Below, piece by piece: positions 12,201-15,200 of a DNA stretch of 64,000 bases. The notes under the pieces are model-generated. The model had not been told where the DNA came from. It searched no databases and was given only the letters and a program-made list of their open reading frames with translations. The stretch spans positions 12,400,001 to 12,464,000 of the forward strand of contig NC_043014.1 of NCBI RefSeq assembly GCF_006345805.1. The letters are read 5' to 3'. The stretch's first letter is position 1, and every line of letters starts with the position of its first letter. The DNA comes from Octopus sinensis (taxonomy: Eukaryota). Position numbers and translations under genes: made by a program.

Positions 12201-15200
12201 TCTTCTTTATGTTTGCATGGGTCAGACAGAATTTATTGAGGCAGGTTTTCTTCAGCTGGATGCCCTTTCTGTCACCAAGTTAGGTGATATTTCCCACCTG
12301 GCCAGACATGTTTCTGCTGAACATTGGAAATGAATGACACCACTTCGATGATAGCAATGACCCTTTTACAACTATCATGTGATATGAAAGCAAGGAGGGA
12401 GACACACACACACTGTGTACACATATATATGTATACTCCTTTACTCTTTTATTTGTTTCAGTCATTTGAATGCAGCCATGCTGGAGCACCACCTTTAGTC
12501 GAGCAAATTGACCCCAGAGCTTATTCTTTGTAAGCCTAGTATTTATTCTATTGGTCACTGTTGCCGAACCACTAAGTTACGGGGATGTAAAGAAACCAAC
12601 AACAGTTGTCAAGTGATGTTGGGGGACAAACACAGACACACAAATACACACACACATATACGATGGGCTTCTTTCAGTTTCCATCTACCAAATCCACTCA
12701 CAAGGCTTTGGTTGGCCTGAGGCTATAGTAGATGACACTTGCCCAAGGTGCCATGCAGTGGACTGAACCCGGGACCATGTGGTTGGTAAGCAAGCTACTT
12801 ACCACACAGTCACTCCTGCGCCTATATATATATATATATATATATATATATATATATATATATATATATATATATATATTATATATATATATATATATAT
12901 ATATATATATATATATATATACTAGCATTAAAGACCCGTCGTTGCCAGGTCATAGTGCTAGTGCATATATATATGTGTACATATTACATGTACATCTATA
13001 TATATACATCTACACATAAAATACAAAATACAAAGTTGTATCTTGATATCACTAGTGATAACAATACTCAAAATATATAACAGACTGGAATTGTAAGCCC
13101 GTCTCTTGTAATTTCGATCAAGTGTATCTTCTCCTCCCTCTTGTATAGAAGTGTGGCTACAATCCAGCCTACCTCTACTTCTGGGGTGGGGGGGCATTTT
13201 TAATTTTTTTTTGGGATGTCCTACGTCCCAGATATAAAGGTAAAGATAAAATATTTCCACTTTGCAAGTTCGAGTTGAGTACTCAATTGCACGCTTCGTT
13301 GACTCGAACCTTGCTTCTATTGTGGCGAATTTAAAACCTCTGATTAGATGTCTTTCATAGTCGCACCAAGACACTTTTCGAAGGTGTTTTCCTCCATGTG
13401 TTCAAATCTTTTTAACAATTCCAGTCTGTTATATATTTTGAGTATTGTTATCACTAGCGATATCAAGATATAACTTTGTATTTTGCATTTTATGTGTAGA
13501 TGTATATATATAGATGTACATGTAATATGTACACATATATACATGCACTAGCACTATGACCTGGCAATGACGGGGTCTTTAATGCTAGTATATATATATA
13601 CTGGCGTAAACACATAAATGTGAAACAAGGTGGAAAAAAAGTACTCAAATACCAGTGGTAGAGTAATATGCTTTATTTAAAGCAGCAGAAAATTCAACAA
13701 AACCTGTTACTCTATATGCATACAGTCCCCTTCTTATTTTCATAAATTCCTCTTCCAAACAATTTTGACGTCATTGCTTATAACGGATTTTTAAAAACAC
13801 TCATTATCACTGTGAACATTATGTAGCAAGCCATAGAAAAGTTTTAGTCCGTCTTGAGGCTGATTGATTTTCCTTGTCTTTCCTGATGAGAAGACGGCAT
13901 AATGCACACTTTATTCCTTCGGAATTAAGAATATGCAGTCTTCGAAACATGTGTTGAAAGTAAAGGAATTGTGTTAAAATCTTCATTCGACTCCATTCTT
14001 TTATTCATTTTATATATATATTATATATAGATATATATATATATATATATATATCTCTTATGATAAAAGGCAGATTTTATCTGCCTCCCAAACAGTTTGT
14101 TTTTTATACAATTCTACAATATAGAATTTCTTCAATTGGAATTTACCTATCATTTTTACAAGTAGATTCCATCGGGTCGTGGCATGTAAAGTTTTTTCAA
14201 TTTCACCACCAATTAAGCAGAAATTCGAGAAAAGTAAATATTTTACCTTTTCCCTCTTTCATTTCAAGTGCTTCACTCCTACCATTACCACTACACTTTC
14301 TCCTCCTTTGTCTTTGCAAGTGTGCAATGATTAAAGTGAAAGTATTTATATAAAAGGGATGAGCAATTAATACTGGTCATCCTTTTTGCTAGAAGATCCG
14401 CTGTGGTCTTATATGCTACACCAATGGTTTTCAATTCATATTAATCAAATTAGTATTCAATTTTTAACCCTTATTATGTGTGTGTGTGTATTAGCAATTC
14501 GTATAAAATTGCATCAATGACTTGAACTTGAATAGAGGTACCGTCTTTACGGAAGCATTTTTGTTAAAATGCCTTCGATAGAAGAAAGTCCAAAAATGAA
14601 TTTCGCTGCAGCCGTACACTTCTATACAAGATTCAATTGATCAAAATTGCAAGAGACGGGCCTACAATTCCAGTCTGTTATATATTTTGAGTATTGTTAT
14701 CACTAGCGATATCAAGATATAACTTTCTATTTTGTATTTTATGTGTAGATGTATATATCTACCCATACACACACACGTACACACACACACACACATACAT
14801 AGGGGCAGGTGTGGCTGTGTGGTAACAAACTACGTTCGAAGATACTGTACTTGATATGGGCGGTAGTACCTTGCCGGTCTATGGCCTACCTTCAACAAAC
14901 CGGGAAGGCACAAACACTCTGTCTTCACATTTGCTGCGTGAGACATGTTTTAATGTTGACGAGCTTGCCAAGTACATAGCCGACAATGAGCCAAAGCTCC
15001 TTCCAGAACAGAAGTTCGCTTACAACTCCGTTGTTAATTCAGTCCGGGCCAAAGCTGGGGGGATATGGCAGGTGTAGCTGTGTGGTAACAAACTACATTC
15101 GAAGATACTGTACTTGATATGGGTGGTAGTGCCTTGCCGGTCTATGGCCTACCCTCAACAAACCGGGAAGGCATAAACACTCTGTCTTCACATTTGCTGC

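Follow-up and report, generated by a model that had tools for sequence, protein, structure and literature searches.

Lone hammerhead ribozymes derived from Penelope-like elements or retrozymes occur by the thousands in many animal genomes, often within introns. In double hammerheads of the newt satellite 2 and avocado sunblotch viroid type, a weak helix III pairs with that of a second copy, forming an extended helix III (summarized in PMC4209133 and PMC7229834). Penelope-like elements, which have been annotated in Octopus vulgaris (PMC13282606), carry hammerheads near their 3' ends, in the pLTRs (PMC8557442); genomic motifs are mostly single, truncated copies, and the minimal hammerheads of Penelope elements typically have an unpaired nucleotide between A9 and G10.1 (PMC4209133). 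Mutations of G8 and C3 abolish cleavage by a Penelope-element hammerhead (PMC11167929).

The hammerheads of invertebrate retrozymes have a 2-bp helix III capped by a tetraloop and reside in low-GC units of ~300-400 bp, and the mussel hammerhead of this build cleaves as a monomer at ~0.1 per minute (PMC7229834). Retrozyme monomers are dispersed, with ~43% of them overlapping introns in Xenopus (bioRxiv 10.64898/2026.07.22.740005). In amniotes, the intronic type I hammerheads HH9 in RECK and HH10 in CCDC186 (RF02275, RF02277; PMC6155905) lie on the sense strand of long introns and are conserved across the group.

Here we describe a type I hammerhead in the third coding intron of CENATAC (CCDC84) of Octopus sinensis, found in a 64-kb window, i.e., the whole stretch of DNA that was analyzed. 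We consider it highly probable that this motif belongs to a solitary fragment, ~0.4 kb long, of a hammerhead-bearing retroelement, Penelope-like or retrozyme, that is evolving neutrally.

A type I hammerhead in intron 3 of CENATAC

Direct reading of the sequence revealed a full type I hammerhead of 99 nt at 13870-13968 on the plus strand (Table 1). Every position of the type I core is in place in O. sinensis, including the A15.1-U16.1 pair and a residue other than G at H17, and the complete core claimed in the earlier note, with its coordinates and stems, agrees with our reading at every coordinate. Three helices surround the core, with G10.1-C11.1 at the base of helix II and a marginal helix III. 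Stem I is composed of 5 bp (CUUUC/GAAAG), a 2x2 loop, and 6 bp (UUCCUU/AAGGAA), helix I being open with both ends of the motif located there, and 54 nt separate A9 from G12. Helix III is formed by two pairs, A13947-U13954 and C13948-G13953, over the tetraloop AUGU.

A palindromic stem III of the ACAUGU type had previously been proposed. The 2-bp helix stands and the hexamer is indeed palindromic, but it is out of register with U16.1, whereas the octamer ACAUGUGU (13947-13954) is both self-complementary and in register. A dimer register on the hexamer was dropped, as a G would fall at position 17 and stem I would be broken. As judged from the letters, two ACAUGUGU octamers could form a dimeric, intermolecular helix III of 8 bp with two central G.U pairs.

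Table 1. Coordinates of the host gene, the insert, and the hammerhead within the 64-kb window
Feature	Position	Strand	Description	Basis
CENATAC coding region	122-41947	+		Pfam PF14968, tblastn, orthologue names
CENATAC coding exons 1-3	~122-255, 5610-5780, 8702-8793	+		
CENATAC coding exons 4-6	~26087-26150, 26876-26938, 32026-32139	+		
CENATAC coding exons 7-9	~34170-34290, 36965-37102, 41771-41947	+		Exon 7 placed from the ORF list, not tblastn
CENATAC intron 3 (third coding intron)	8794-26086	+	17,293 nt, GT...AG	tblastn of O. vulgaris protein, splice junctions
Foldback, MITE-like element	12923-13588		Right flank is the (TA)6 remnant at 13589-13601	
(TA)6 remnant, 5' border of insert	13589-13601	.		
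Insert carrying the hammerhead	13602-14009	+	408 bp, 33.6% GC, no poly(A), (TA)n on both sides	
Stem I, 5' strand	13870-13882	+	UUCCUU 13870-13875, loop GU, CUUUC 13878-13882	Direct reading, MFE fold
Catalytic core C3 U4 G5 A6 U7 G8 A9	13883-13889	+	CUGAUGA	Direct reading
G8 of core	13888	+	T at the same site in O. vulgaris	
Helix II, whole	13890-13943	+		Direct reading, fold
Helix II base	13890-13895 / 13938-13943		GAAGAC/GUCUUC, 6 Watson-Crick bp, G10.1-C11.1 first	
Helix II extension	13897-13901 / 13932-13936		GCAUA/UAUGC, 5 bp, beyond a 1x1 G/A mismatch	
Helix II distal hairpin	13909-13929	+		
Core G12 A13 A14	13944-13946	+	A15.1 at 13947	Direct reading
Helix III, ACAUGUGU	13947-13954	+	A15.1-U16.1, C15.2-G16.2, tetraloop AUGU	Direct reading
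U16.1 and H17	13954 and 13955	+	H17 is U	Direct reading
Predicted cleavage site	13955/13956	+	3' of U17, before G1.1; triplet GUU	Hammerhead numbering
Stem I, 3' strand	13956-13968	+	GAAAG 13956-13960, loop UA, AAGGAA 13963-13968	Direct reading, MFE fold
(TA)n microsatellite, 3' border of insert	14010-14052	.	Differs in length from the O. vulgaris tract	
Second, degenerate family member	51878-51943	-	3' part only	

When the 99-nt motif was folded, both the MFE and the centroid structures formed a three-way junction with stems I and II in place, at -26.5 kcal/mol (z = -2.9), and this fold was kept in a 161-nt context. The helix III hairpin adds +0.9 kcal/mol and is thus marginally unstable. A descriptor scan of both strands of the window returned the 13870-13968 motif as the single type I hammerhead; the motif at 11.1 kb on the opposite strand, to which it had been called unrelated, has no sequence in common with it.

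Could AT-rich intronic DNA produce such a match to the hammerhead consensus by chance? When the sequence was shuffled 300 times with its dinucleotides preserved, a loose descriptor (minimum stem length of 4 bp, with G.U pairs allowed) gave 4 matches in total, or ~0.013 per window, which corresponds to hundreds per genome. Also in line with a chance origin, the Rfam hammerhead models gave no match in the whole window at gathering score and none at E<=10 on 601 nt or on 115 nt, and the 13870-13968 motif matched none of the families RF00163, RF00008, RF02275, RF02276, and RF02277; these models likely miss it owing to its 42-nt helix II elaboration and non-standard helix lengths. Against this, once the stems in the descriptor were set to the observed lengths or close to them, the 300 shuffles had 0 matches, and a composition-based estimate for the 5-bp stem I and 6-bp stem II alone, which leaves out both stem extensions, was ~1e-5 per 64-kb window. 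Moreover, the 6-bp and 5-bp extensions, G10.1-C11.1, and the self-complementary helix III all lay outside the descriptor, and a second family fragment (described below) shares the 3' half and tail, so that we regard coincidence as extremely unlikely. The stem II/helix III signature was also sought by exact pattern in metagenome contigs and had 0 matches, as expected for octopus DNA.

The placement of the motif in sense orientation within intron 3 of CENATAC, put at 17.3 kb, was upheld by Pfam PF14968 (E = 3.6e-21 for exons 1 and 2 combined), by orthologue names, and by the splice junctions, which delimit 17,293 nt. A HMMER search with the two joined exons found the octopus protein, and the 45-aa first exon alone gave no match in a word-index search of proteins; CENATAC/CCDC84 is the name borne by the orthologues in O. 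vulgaris, O. sinensis, and O. bimaculoides. The distance from the hammerhead to the 5' splice site is 5,076 nt and that to the 3' splice site is 12,118 nt, and an identical motif is present in the O. sinensis assembly GCA_006345805.1 (CM016876.1) at a constant offset of 879. A database look-up of the ORF at 14060-14353 beside the motif had no match on record. The ORFs at 15.1-16.1 kb are PIF1-like, and the region around the insert is packed with SINE/MITE-type repeats.

The insert and its likeness to hammerhead-bearing retroelements

Downstream of the motif, the insert continues for 41 bp to its 3' border, where its last nucleotides, ...ACTCCATTCTTTTATTCATTT, abut the (TA)n tract. The 5'-truncated or degenerate family member at 51878-51943 on the minus strand, in which an 18-mer is matched with 2 mismatches (0.09 expected by chance), aligns with the 13.9-kb copy over 67 nt at 75% identity (E = 1.4e-6). 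It keeps the stem II 3' strand, GAAAC, AUGUGU, the stem I 3' strand, and the tail, and it ends ...ACTCCATT directly against (TA)n, like the 13.9-kb copy; no CUGANGA box or core-like heptamer was found in it. The 64-kb window contains no full second copy and no tandem or direct repeat of 13602-14009, nor is there a same-strand dimer partner for the hammerhead within these 64 kb.

Compared to the metazoan non-LTR retrozymes of coral, mussel, and axolotl, the octopus motif is likewise a type I hammerhead with a canonical core and a 2-bp helix III under a tetraloop, and, as in the mussel retrozyme hammerhead, the archetypal loop1-loop2 nucleotides are absent (PMC7229834). The insert, at 408 bp and 33.6% GC, compares with retrozyme units of ~300-400 bp and GC below 45% (PMC7229834), and the traits of a retrozyme unit when taken as ~170-400 bp, GC below 45%, and a helix III of 2 bp plus tetraloop are all present (AC/GU with AUGU). 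Unlike retrozymes, which form head-to-tail tandems of at least two units, each with a type I hammerhead, the octopus locus holds one unit, a single copy rather than an array, from which no unit-length or circular RNA could be released; its helix II is also much longer.

With the minimal hammerheads of Penelope pLTRs (PMC4209133, PMC8557442), the octopus motif shares a short helix I, a long helix II, G10.1-C11.1, and a self-complementary helix III region, and it is also a lone, probably truncated copy near the 3' end of its insert by (TA)n. Four of the five minimal-hammerhead traits of PMC4209133 are present; the one absent is the unpaired nucleotide after A9, and, in further contrast to the Penelope motifs, the octopus copy has a real, albeit weak, helix III hairpin. 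Unlike Penelope elements, the locus has neither an RT/GIY-YIG ORF nor a second pLTR; direct repeats flanking an RT plus GIY-YIG ORF do not occur in the window, where the sole RT is that of an APE-type LINE at 21.5-24.7 kb, although one would not look for the ORF in a truncated Penelope-like copy. The (TA)n on both sides of the insert, and against the shared 3' end of the second, shorter copy, is suggestive of microsatellite insertion as in Penelope elements, but other elements target TA too, and the (TA)n bias was reported for the Naiad clade, which is without canonical hammerheads (PMC8557442), so it supports a Penelope parentage only loosely.

The weak helix III of the octopus motif, ACAUGUGU, could pair with a second copy as in the newt satellite 2 and avocado sunblotch viroid type. 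In contrast to those double hammerheads, however, no second octopus copy is present on the same transcript within 64 kb, and a dimer would need two pre-mRNAs.

The insert might instead derive from another class of mobile element, for instance a non-autonomous repeat that is unclassified or a SINE-like element similar to Sm-alpha of Schistosoma. Consistent with this, no Penelope-type ORF lies nearby, the surroundings are dense in SINE/MITE-type repeats, and direct reading of the insert yields a weak A-box-like CAGTGGTAGAG (~13654) and a B-box-like TTCGACTCC (~13986). These strings are ~330 bp apart, however, far beyond pol III spacing, and the insert has no poly(A) or A-rich tail. In 13400-14400, no tRNA-like gene was detected by ARAGORN, a result that speaks against descent from a tRNA-SINE, and Rfam detected no tRNA or SINE RNA in the 601 nt around the motif. 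We hold a source of this sort to be unlikely. The Penelope-kind mobile-element origin put forward earlier fits the flanks and the partial second copy, and we infer a Penelope or retrozyme parentage; because no RT/GIY-YIG ORF or tandem partner adjoins the motif, the case for this parentage is built on the type of motif, its flanking sequences, and a single partial second copy.

Divergence among octopus species

The orthologous region of O. vulgaris (GCA_951406725.2) is colinear with the window at 98-99% identity, and the 408-bp insert is 99% identical there. The O. vulgaris core reads CTGATTA in place of CTGATGA, i.e., a G8-to-U change (G8U), and its stem II reads GTTTTC as compared with GTCTTC, a C-to-T substitution at position 13940 that turns a G-C pair into G.U. 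With U in place of G8, the O. vulgaris allele lacks a complete hammerhead core and is predicted to be dead. G8 is presumably the ancestral state, as read from two alleles without an outgroup.

Between O. sinensis and O. vulgaris, substitutions number 91 of 11,381 sites intron-wide (0.80%), 2 of 99 in the motif, and 4 of 408 in the insert. At the intron background rate, the probability of at least 2 changes in 99 nt is 0.19, and thus the motif has no sign of constraint. Since this test of neutrality is weak at ~0.8% divergence, where zero changes in 99 nt are expected 45% of the time, the argument against function leans on which base changed, namely G8.

In O. bimaculoides, intron 3 is ~1.48 kb long, and the interval 8961-20427 of the window is represented by ~115 bp, so that the 11.5-kb block with the motif is missing; no homologue of the insert was found in O. 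bimaculoides or Argonauta. The possibility that the intronic O. bimaculoides gap of 255 N conceals the insert was rejected, as this gap is downstream of the 8961/20427 junction. The absence could in principle reflect a deletion in O. bimaculoides.

The check named in the earlier note, conservation in other Octopus species, came out negative: one species has the core change, O. bimaculoides and Argonauta lack the sequence, and divergence within the motif is no lower than across the intron. The idea of an intronic ribozyme that is conserved or matters to the host is accordingly unsupported. Conservation beyond neutral expectation, as in an intronic hammerhead recruited by its host, was not seen. 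The likeness to amniote HH9 and HH10 extends to the type I architecture, the sense orientation, and the long intron. In contrast to those motifs, conserved across amniotes, the octopus motif is confined to the O. vulgaris/sinensis lineage, is mutated in its core in one of the two species, and has no Rfam match.

Proposed history of the copy and its meaning for CENATAC

Under the neutral-fragment reading that we prefer, the sequence would be either the 3' end of a Penelope-like element, as part of a pLTR, or a single unit of a non-autonomous retrozyme derivative, and the insert a 5'-truncated or solo unit. Its entry into a (TA)n microsatellite within CENATAC intron 3 would postdate the divergence from O. 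bimaculoides and fall in the ancestor shared by O. sinensis and O. vulgaris. Transcripts of the parent element, whether read-through or multimeric, would be cut by the ribozyme 3' of H17, leaving 5'-OH and 2',3'-cyclic phosphate ends and generating unit-length RNA. The copy at CENATAC, alone and with no host role, would since have drifted neutrally, the O. sinensis allele retaining a perfect core and the O. vulgaris allele losing G8. At most, the O. sinensis allele may nick a fraction of CENATAC pre-mRNA or of the excised intron at 13955/13956; weak cleavage in this species is possible, and activity in vivo is probably low or nil.

A more consequential role is conceivable, in which a working, species-specific ribozyme cleaves nascent O. 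sinensis CENATAC pre-mRNA and lowers or modulates the output of this minor-spliceosome factor. The intact core, the strong stems I and II, the location in sense, with the 3' splice site 12 kb downstream, and the persistence of the fold in its 161-nt context are all compatible with it, and invertebrate hammerheads with a 2-bp helix III and tetraloop do cleave as monomers (PMC7229834). Yet the sister species carries G8U and O. bimaculoides lacks the element, which together indicate that CENATAC does not depend on the hammerhead. Excess conservation is likewise missing, helix III is marginally unstable, and no same-strand dimer partner exists in 64 kb. In addition, GUU is a suboptimal cleavage triplet, and introns with slow hammerheads are generally still spliced. 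We judge this role distinctly improbable. Co-transcriptional cutting of the intron, as suggested earlier, is possible for the O. sinensis allele only, which would act as a lone copy with a marginal helix III and a GUU triplet; that an active O. sinensis monomer would cut a measurable share of CENATAC pre-mRNA in intron 3, while the O. vulgaris G8U allele would not, seems to us very improbable.

As lone hammerheads are commonplace in animal genomes, the octopus motif is of little weight for biology at large, and a perfect core by itself is no evidence of host function. Canonical-core type I hammerheads are nevertheless now documented in an octopus genome, and our literature search found no published report of one. 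With G8 in O. sinensis and U8 in O. vulgaris, the two orthologues constitute a natural pair at the same intronic site, the first potentially active and the second predicted to be dead, through which any effect of a sense-strand intronic hammerhead on its host gene could be probed. If the O. sinensis allele did cut a measurable share of the pre-mRNA, a mobile-element ribozyme would have given rise to a recent, species-specific difference in the expression of a minor-spliceosome factor.

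Gene context and anatomy of the 13.9-kb hammerhead

Two forward-strand ORF fragments matched the Pfam family CCDC84 (PF14968) at profile positions 1-38 and 39-90, reaching E = 3.6e-21 when joined, and a HMMER search found at 99% identity a 350-aa O. vulgaris protein named CCDC84-like (P0001), whose cluster partner is the O. bimaculoides 'centrosomal AT-AC splicing factor'. P0001 mapped onto the window as nine coding exons on the forward strand at 122-41947, with the motif on the sense strand of CENATAC intron 3, 5.1 kb downstream of the 5' splice site. Thus the Pfam match, the P0001 mapping and the GT-AG intron ends bore out an earlier note made from sequence alone on the gene, its strand, and the number and size of the intron. 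In the O. sinensis locus (L004, GCA_006345805.1, CM016876.1) an identical motif stands at a constant offset of 879, which assigns the window to O. sinensis. Compared to the O. vulgaris 350-aa protein, the last coding exon of O. sinensis (41771-41947) carries five inserted residues (VASTG) and two substitutions, in agreement with the 355-aa O. sinensis isoform X1.

Direct reading located every hammerhead element that had been described at 13870-13968 (Table). Beyond its base, helix II continues with a G/A mismatch, a GCAUA/UAUGC extension and a distal hairpin. For the 99-nt RNA, the predicted fold is the three-way junction to be expected (-26.5 kcal/mol, z = -2.9), which was retained in a 161-nt context; since closure of helix III was predicted to cost +0.9 kcal/mol, this helix is marginal. 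The 2-bp helix III described previously stands, but its palindrome does not: the hexamer ACAUGU was rejected because it would place G at position 17, and the octamer ACAUGUGU, which includes two G.U pairs, is the register-compatible palindrome.

Table. Features of the 13.9-kb hammerhead, its insert and neighboring elements (window positions)
Feature	Position	Strand	Details
Third coding intron of CENATAC	8794-26086	+	17,293 nt, GT-AG ends
Insert with hammerhead	13602-14009	+	408 bp, 33.6% GC, without poly(A)
Helix I, outer 6 bp	13870-13875 / 13963-13968	+	beyond 2x2 loop
Helix I, inner 5 bp	13878-13882 / 13956-13960	+	followed by 2x2 loop
Core CUGAUGA	13883-13889	+	direct sequence reading
Helix II base GAAGAC/GUCUUC	13890-13895 / 13938-13943	+	first pair G10.1-C11.1
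Core GAAA	13944-13947	+	direct reading
Helix III, 2 bp	13947-13954	+	A13947-U13954 and C13948-G13953, closing tetraloop AUGU
U17	13955	+	direct reading
Degenerate second family member	51878-51943 (possibly up to ~52085)	-	short-pattern search
11.1-kb motif	10911-11327	-	type I hammerhead-like; core CTGAAGA at 11117-11111
Terminal direct repeats of 11.1-kb unit	10911-10973 and 11265-11327		63 bp
Foldback, MITE-like element	12923-13588		terminal inverted repeats ~160-170 bp, 97% complementary, start CTAGCATTAAAGACCCGTCG...
Further partial foldback arm	14628-14761		
~313-bp repeat unit	14031-14343		immediately 3' of hammerhead insert; begins at (TA)n with CTCTTATGATAAAAGGCAG
Copy of ~313-bp repeat	9233-9476		82%
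Tandem duplication	14804-15064 / 15067-15327		263 bp, 97% identical; precedes PIF1-like fragments
PIF1-like helicase region (PF05970)	14804-16102	+	ORF fragments 15119-15568 and 15755-16102
APE-endonuclease and RT non-LTR element	~20866-25167	+	sense orientation in intron 3; three frameshifted ORFs (21573-22337, 22496-23623, 23767-24696); PHD-like finger in the last

The sequence CTGATGA occurs 8 times in the window, and hammerhead stems accompany it only at the 13.9-kb motif. A loose descriptor matched 4 times in total over 300 shuffles that preserved dinucleotide composition, and no match was obtained with descriptors set at or close to the observed stem lengths. From composition, the two basal stems alone are expected about 1e-5 times per window, or roughly 0.5 per octopus-sized genome, an estimate that falls by orders of magnitude when both stem extensions are counted. 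By contrast, the Rfam hammerhead models missed the motif, even when 115 nt were scanned at E<=10, probably owing to the 42 nt by which helix II is elaborated.

The insert, its relatives and its neighbors

To its left the insert abuts (TA)6, to its right a (TA)n tract; the left (TA)6 also flanks the foldback element, which entered the same microsatellite. No full second copy was found within the window. The degenerate copy near 51.9 kb, which sits between microsatellites, retains the helix II 3' strand, GAAAC, AUGUGU, the helix I 3' strand and the tail, with an 18-mer match at 2 mismatches (0.09 expected by chance) and a 67-nt alignment to the 13.9-kb copy at E = 1.4e-6; a CUGANGA box was looked for there and is absent. 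Its end, ...ACTCCATT, adjoins (TA)n directly, and the 13.9-kb copy likewise abuts (TA)n. Two copies of unequal length with a common 3' end at a microsatellite fit target-primed reverse transcription with 5' truncation. The outer stem I 5' strand, TTTTCCTTGT, also recurs ~190 bp upstream, and the whole 192-bp unit may be an internally rearranged copy, not a simple truncation.

Penelope-like elements, which are annotated in O. vulgaris (PMC13282606), carry hammerheads in pLTRs near the 3' end, and mostly single, truncated motifs are left (PMC4209133, PMC8557442). Retrozymes of metazoans are GC-poor units (~300-400 bp) bearing type I hammerheads; in the invertebrate forms, helix III consists of 2 bp plus a tetraloop (PMC7229834). 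They are argued to be non-autonomous Penelope derivatives in a preprint from 2026, which reports dispersed monomers and, for Xenopus, an overlap with introns for ~43% of copies (10.64898/2026.07.22.740005). The 13.9-kb motif fits this Penelope/retrozyme world, with incomplete membership: the unpaired nucleotide after A9 that is typical of Penelope minimal hammerheads is missing, the hammerhead unit has no tandem partner, and no RT/GIY-YIG ORF lies near the motif, the RT at 21.5-24.7 kb being that of an APE-type LINE. The (TA)n flanks lend only loose support to Penelope parentage, as the clade with a reported (TA)n insertion bias, Naiad, is without canonical hammerheads (PMC8557442). A parent element of a different class, or a chance match, which the shuffles and the 51.9-kb relative speak against, is improbable.

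Intron 3 holds further repeats. The 11.1-kb motif, the second ribozyme mentioned in the earlier note, has a palindromic helix III, ACUGCAGU, and an apparently mismatched helix II base (C/A), and lies within a 354-bp unit present in ~1.18 copies, a layout longer than one unit such as a retrozyme copy should show. O. vulgaris has it at 99% identity, with a single difference close to stem I (11123), and O. bimaculoides lacks it; the O. vulgaris locus (L001) also has a partial copy (86%) at 7983-8128. The ~313-bp repeat is single in O. sinensis and duplicated in tandem in O. vulgaris (L001 15890-16524). The PIF1-like fragments and tandem duplication are probably a Helitron remnant. The non-LTR element is missing at the O. 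vulgaris orthologous locus and is therefore either polymorphic or newly inserted in the O. sinensis lineage. Intron 3 measures 17.3 kb in O. sinensis versus ~1.5 kb in O. bimaculoides (L002 4659-6140), and the whole gene 41.8 kb versus 19.6 kb; nested repeats (SINE-like units, MITE, Helitron-like fragment, LINE and two hammerhead units) make up the difference.

Comparison with other octopods

The O. vulgaris locus (L001, GCA_951406725.2) is colinear with the window at 98-99% identity. Its orthologous motif reads CTGATTA, i.e., G8 to U, and its helix II 3' strand reads GTTTTC, turning a G-C pair into G.U. Between the two species, 2 of the 99 nt of the motif and 4 of 408 in the whole insert are changed, compared to 91 of 11,381 aligned sites (0.80%) in intron 3; the motif therefore bears no sign of constraint, and one of its two changes hits an invariant catalytic base. 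Mutation of G8 or C3 abolished cleavage in a Penelope-element hammerhead (PMC11167929), and no activity is predicted for the O. vulgaris allele. In O. bimaculoides, where intron 3 is only ~1.48 kb, the 11.5-kb block with both hammerhead motifs (8961-20427) corresponds to about 115 bp, and the single assembly gap in that intron is located away from the junction. The Argonauta hians gene (L003) spans 7.8 kb and lacks any remnant of the insert. Conservation in other Octopus species, which the earlier note had proposed as a check, was thus contradicted by G8U in O. vulgaris and by the missing block in O. bimaculoides. Amniote intronic hammerheads are defined by conservation, and the 13.9-kb motif differs in exactly that.

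Within its parent element, the ribozyme would cleave that element's transcripts 3' of H17. The lone 13.9-kb copy would be transcribed solely with the CENATAC intron, where slow cleavage after U13955 is predicted to be possible for the O. sinensis allele. The GUU triplet and weak helix III argue for low cleavage rates, and no dimer partner was found on the same strand of the window. A species-specific effect of the motif on its host gene is very improbable. CENATAC is independent of the motif, since the copy is dead in one sister species and missing from O. bimaculoides. We consider it quite probable that the 13.9-kb hammerhead is a neutral retroelement relic. The anatomy, gene and likely origin proposed earlier hold, but a role of the ribozyme in its host gene finds no support, given G8U, the absence in O. 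bimaculoides and the lack of constraint. The G8/U8 species pair nonetheless provides a convenient natural control for intronic hammerhead effects.
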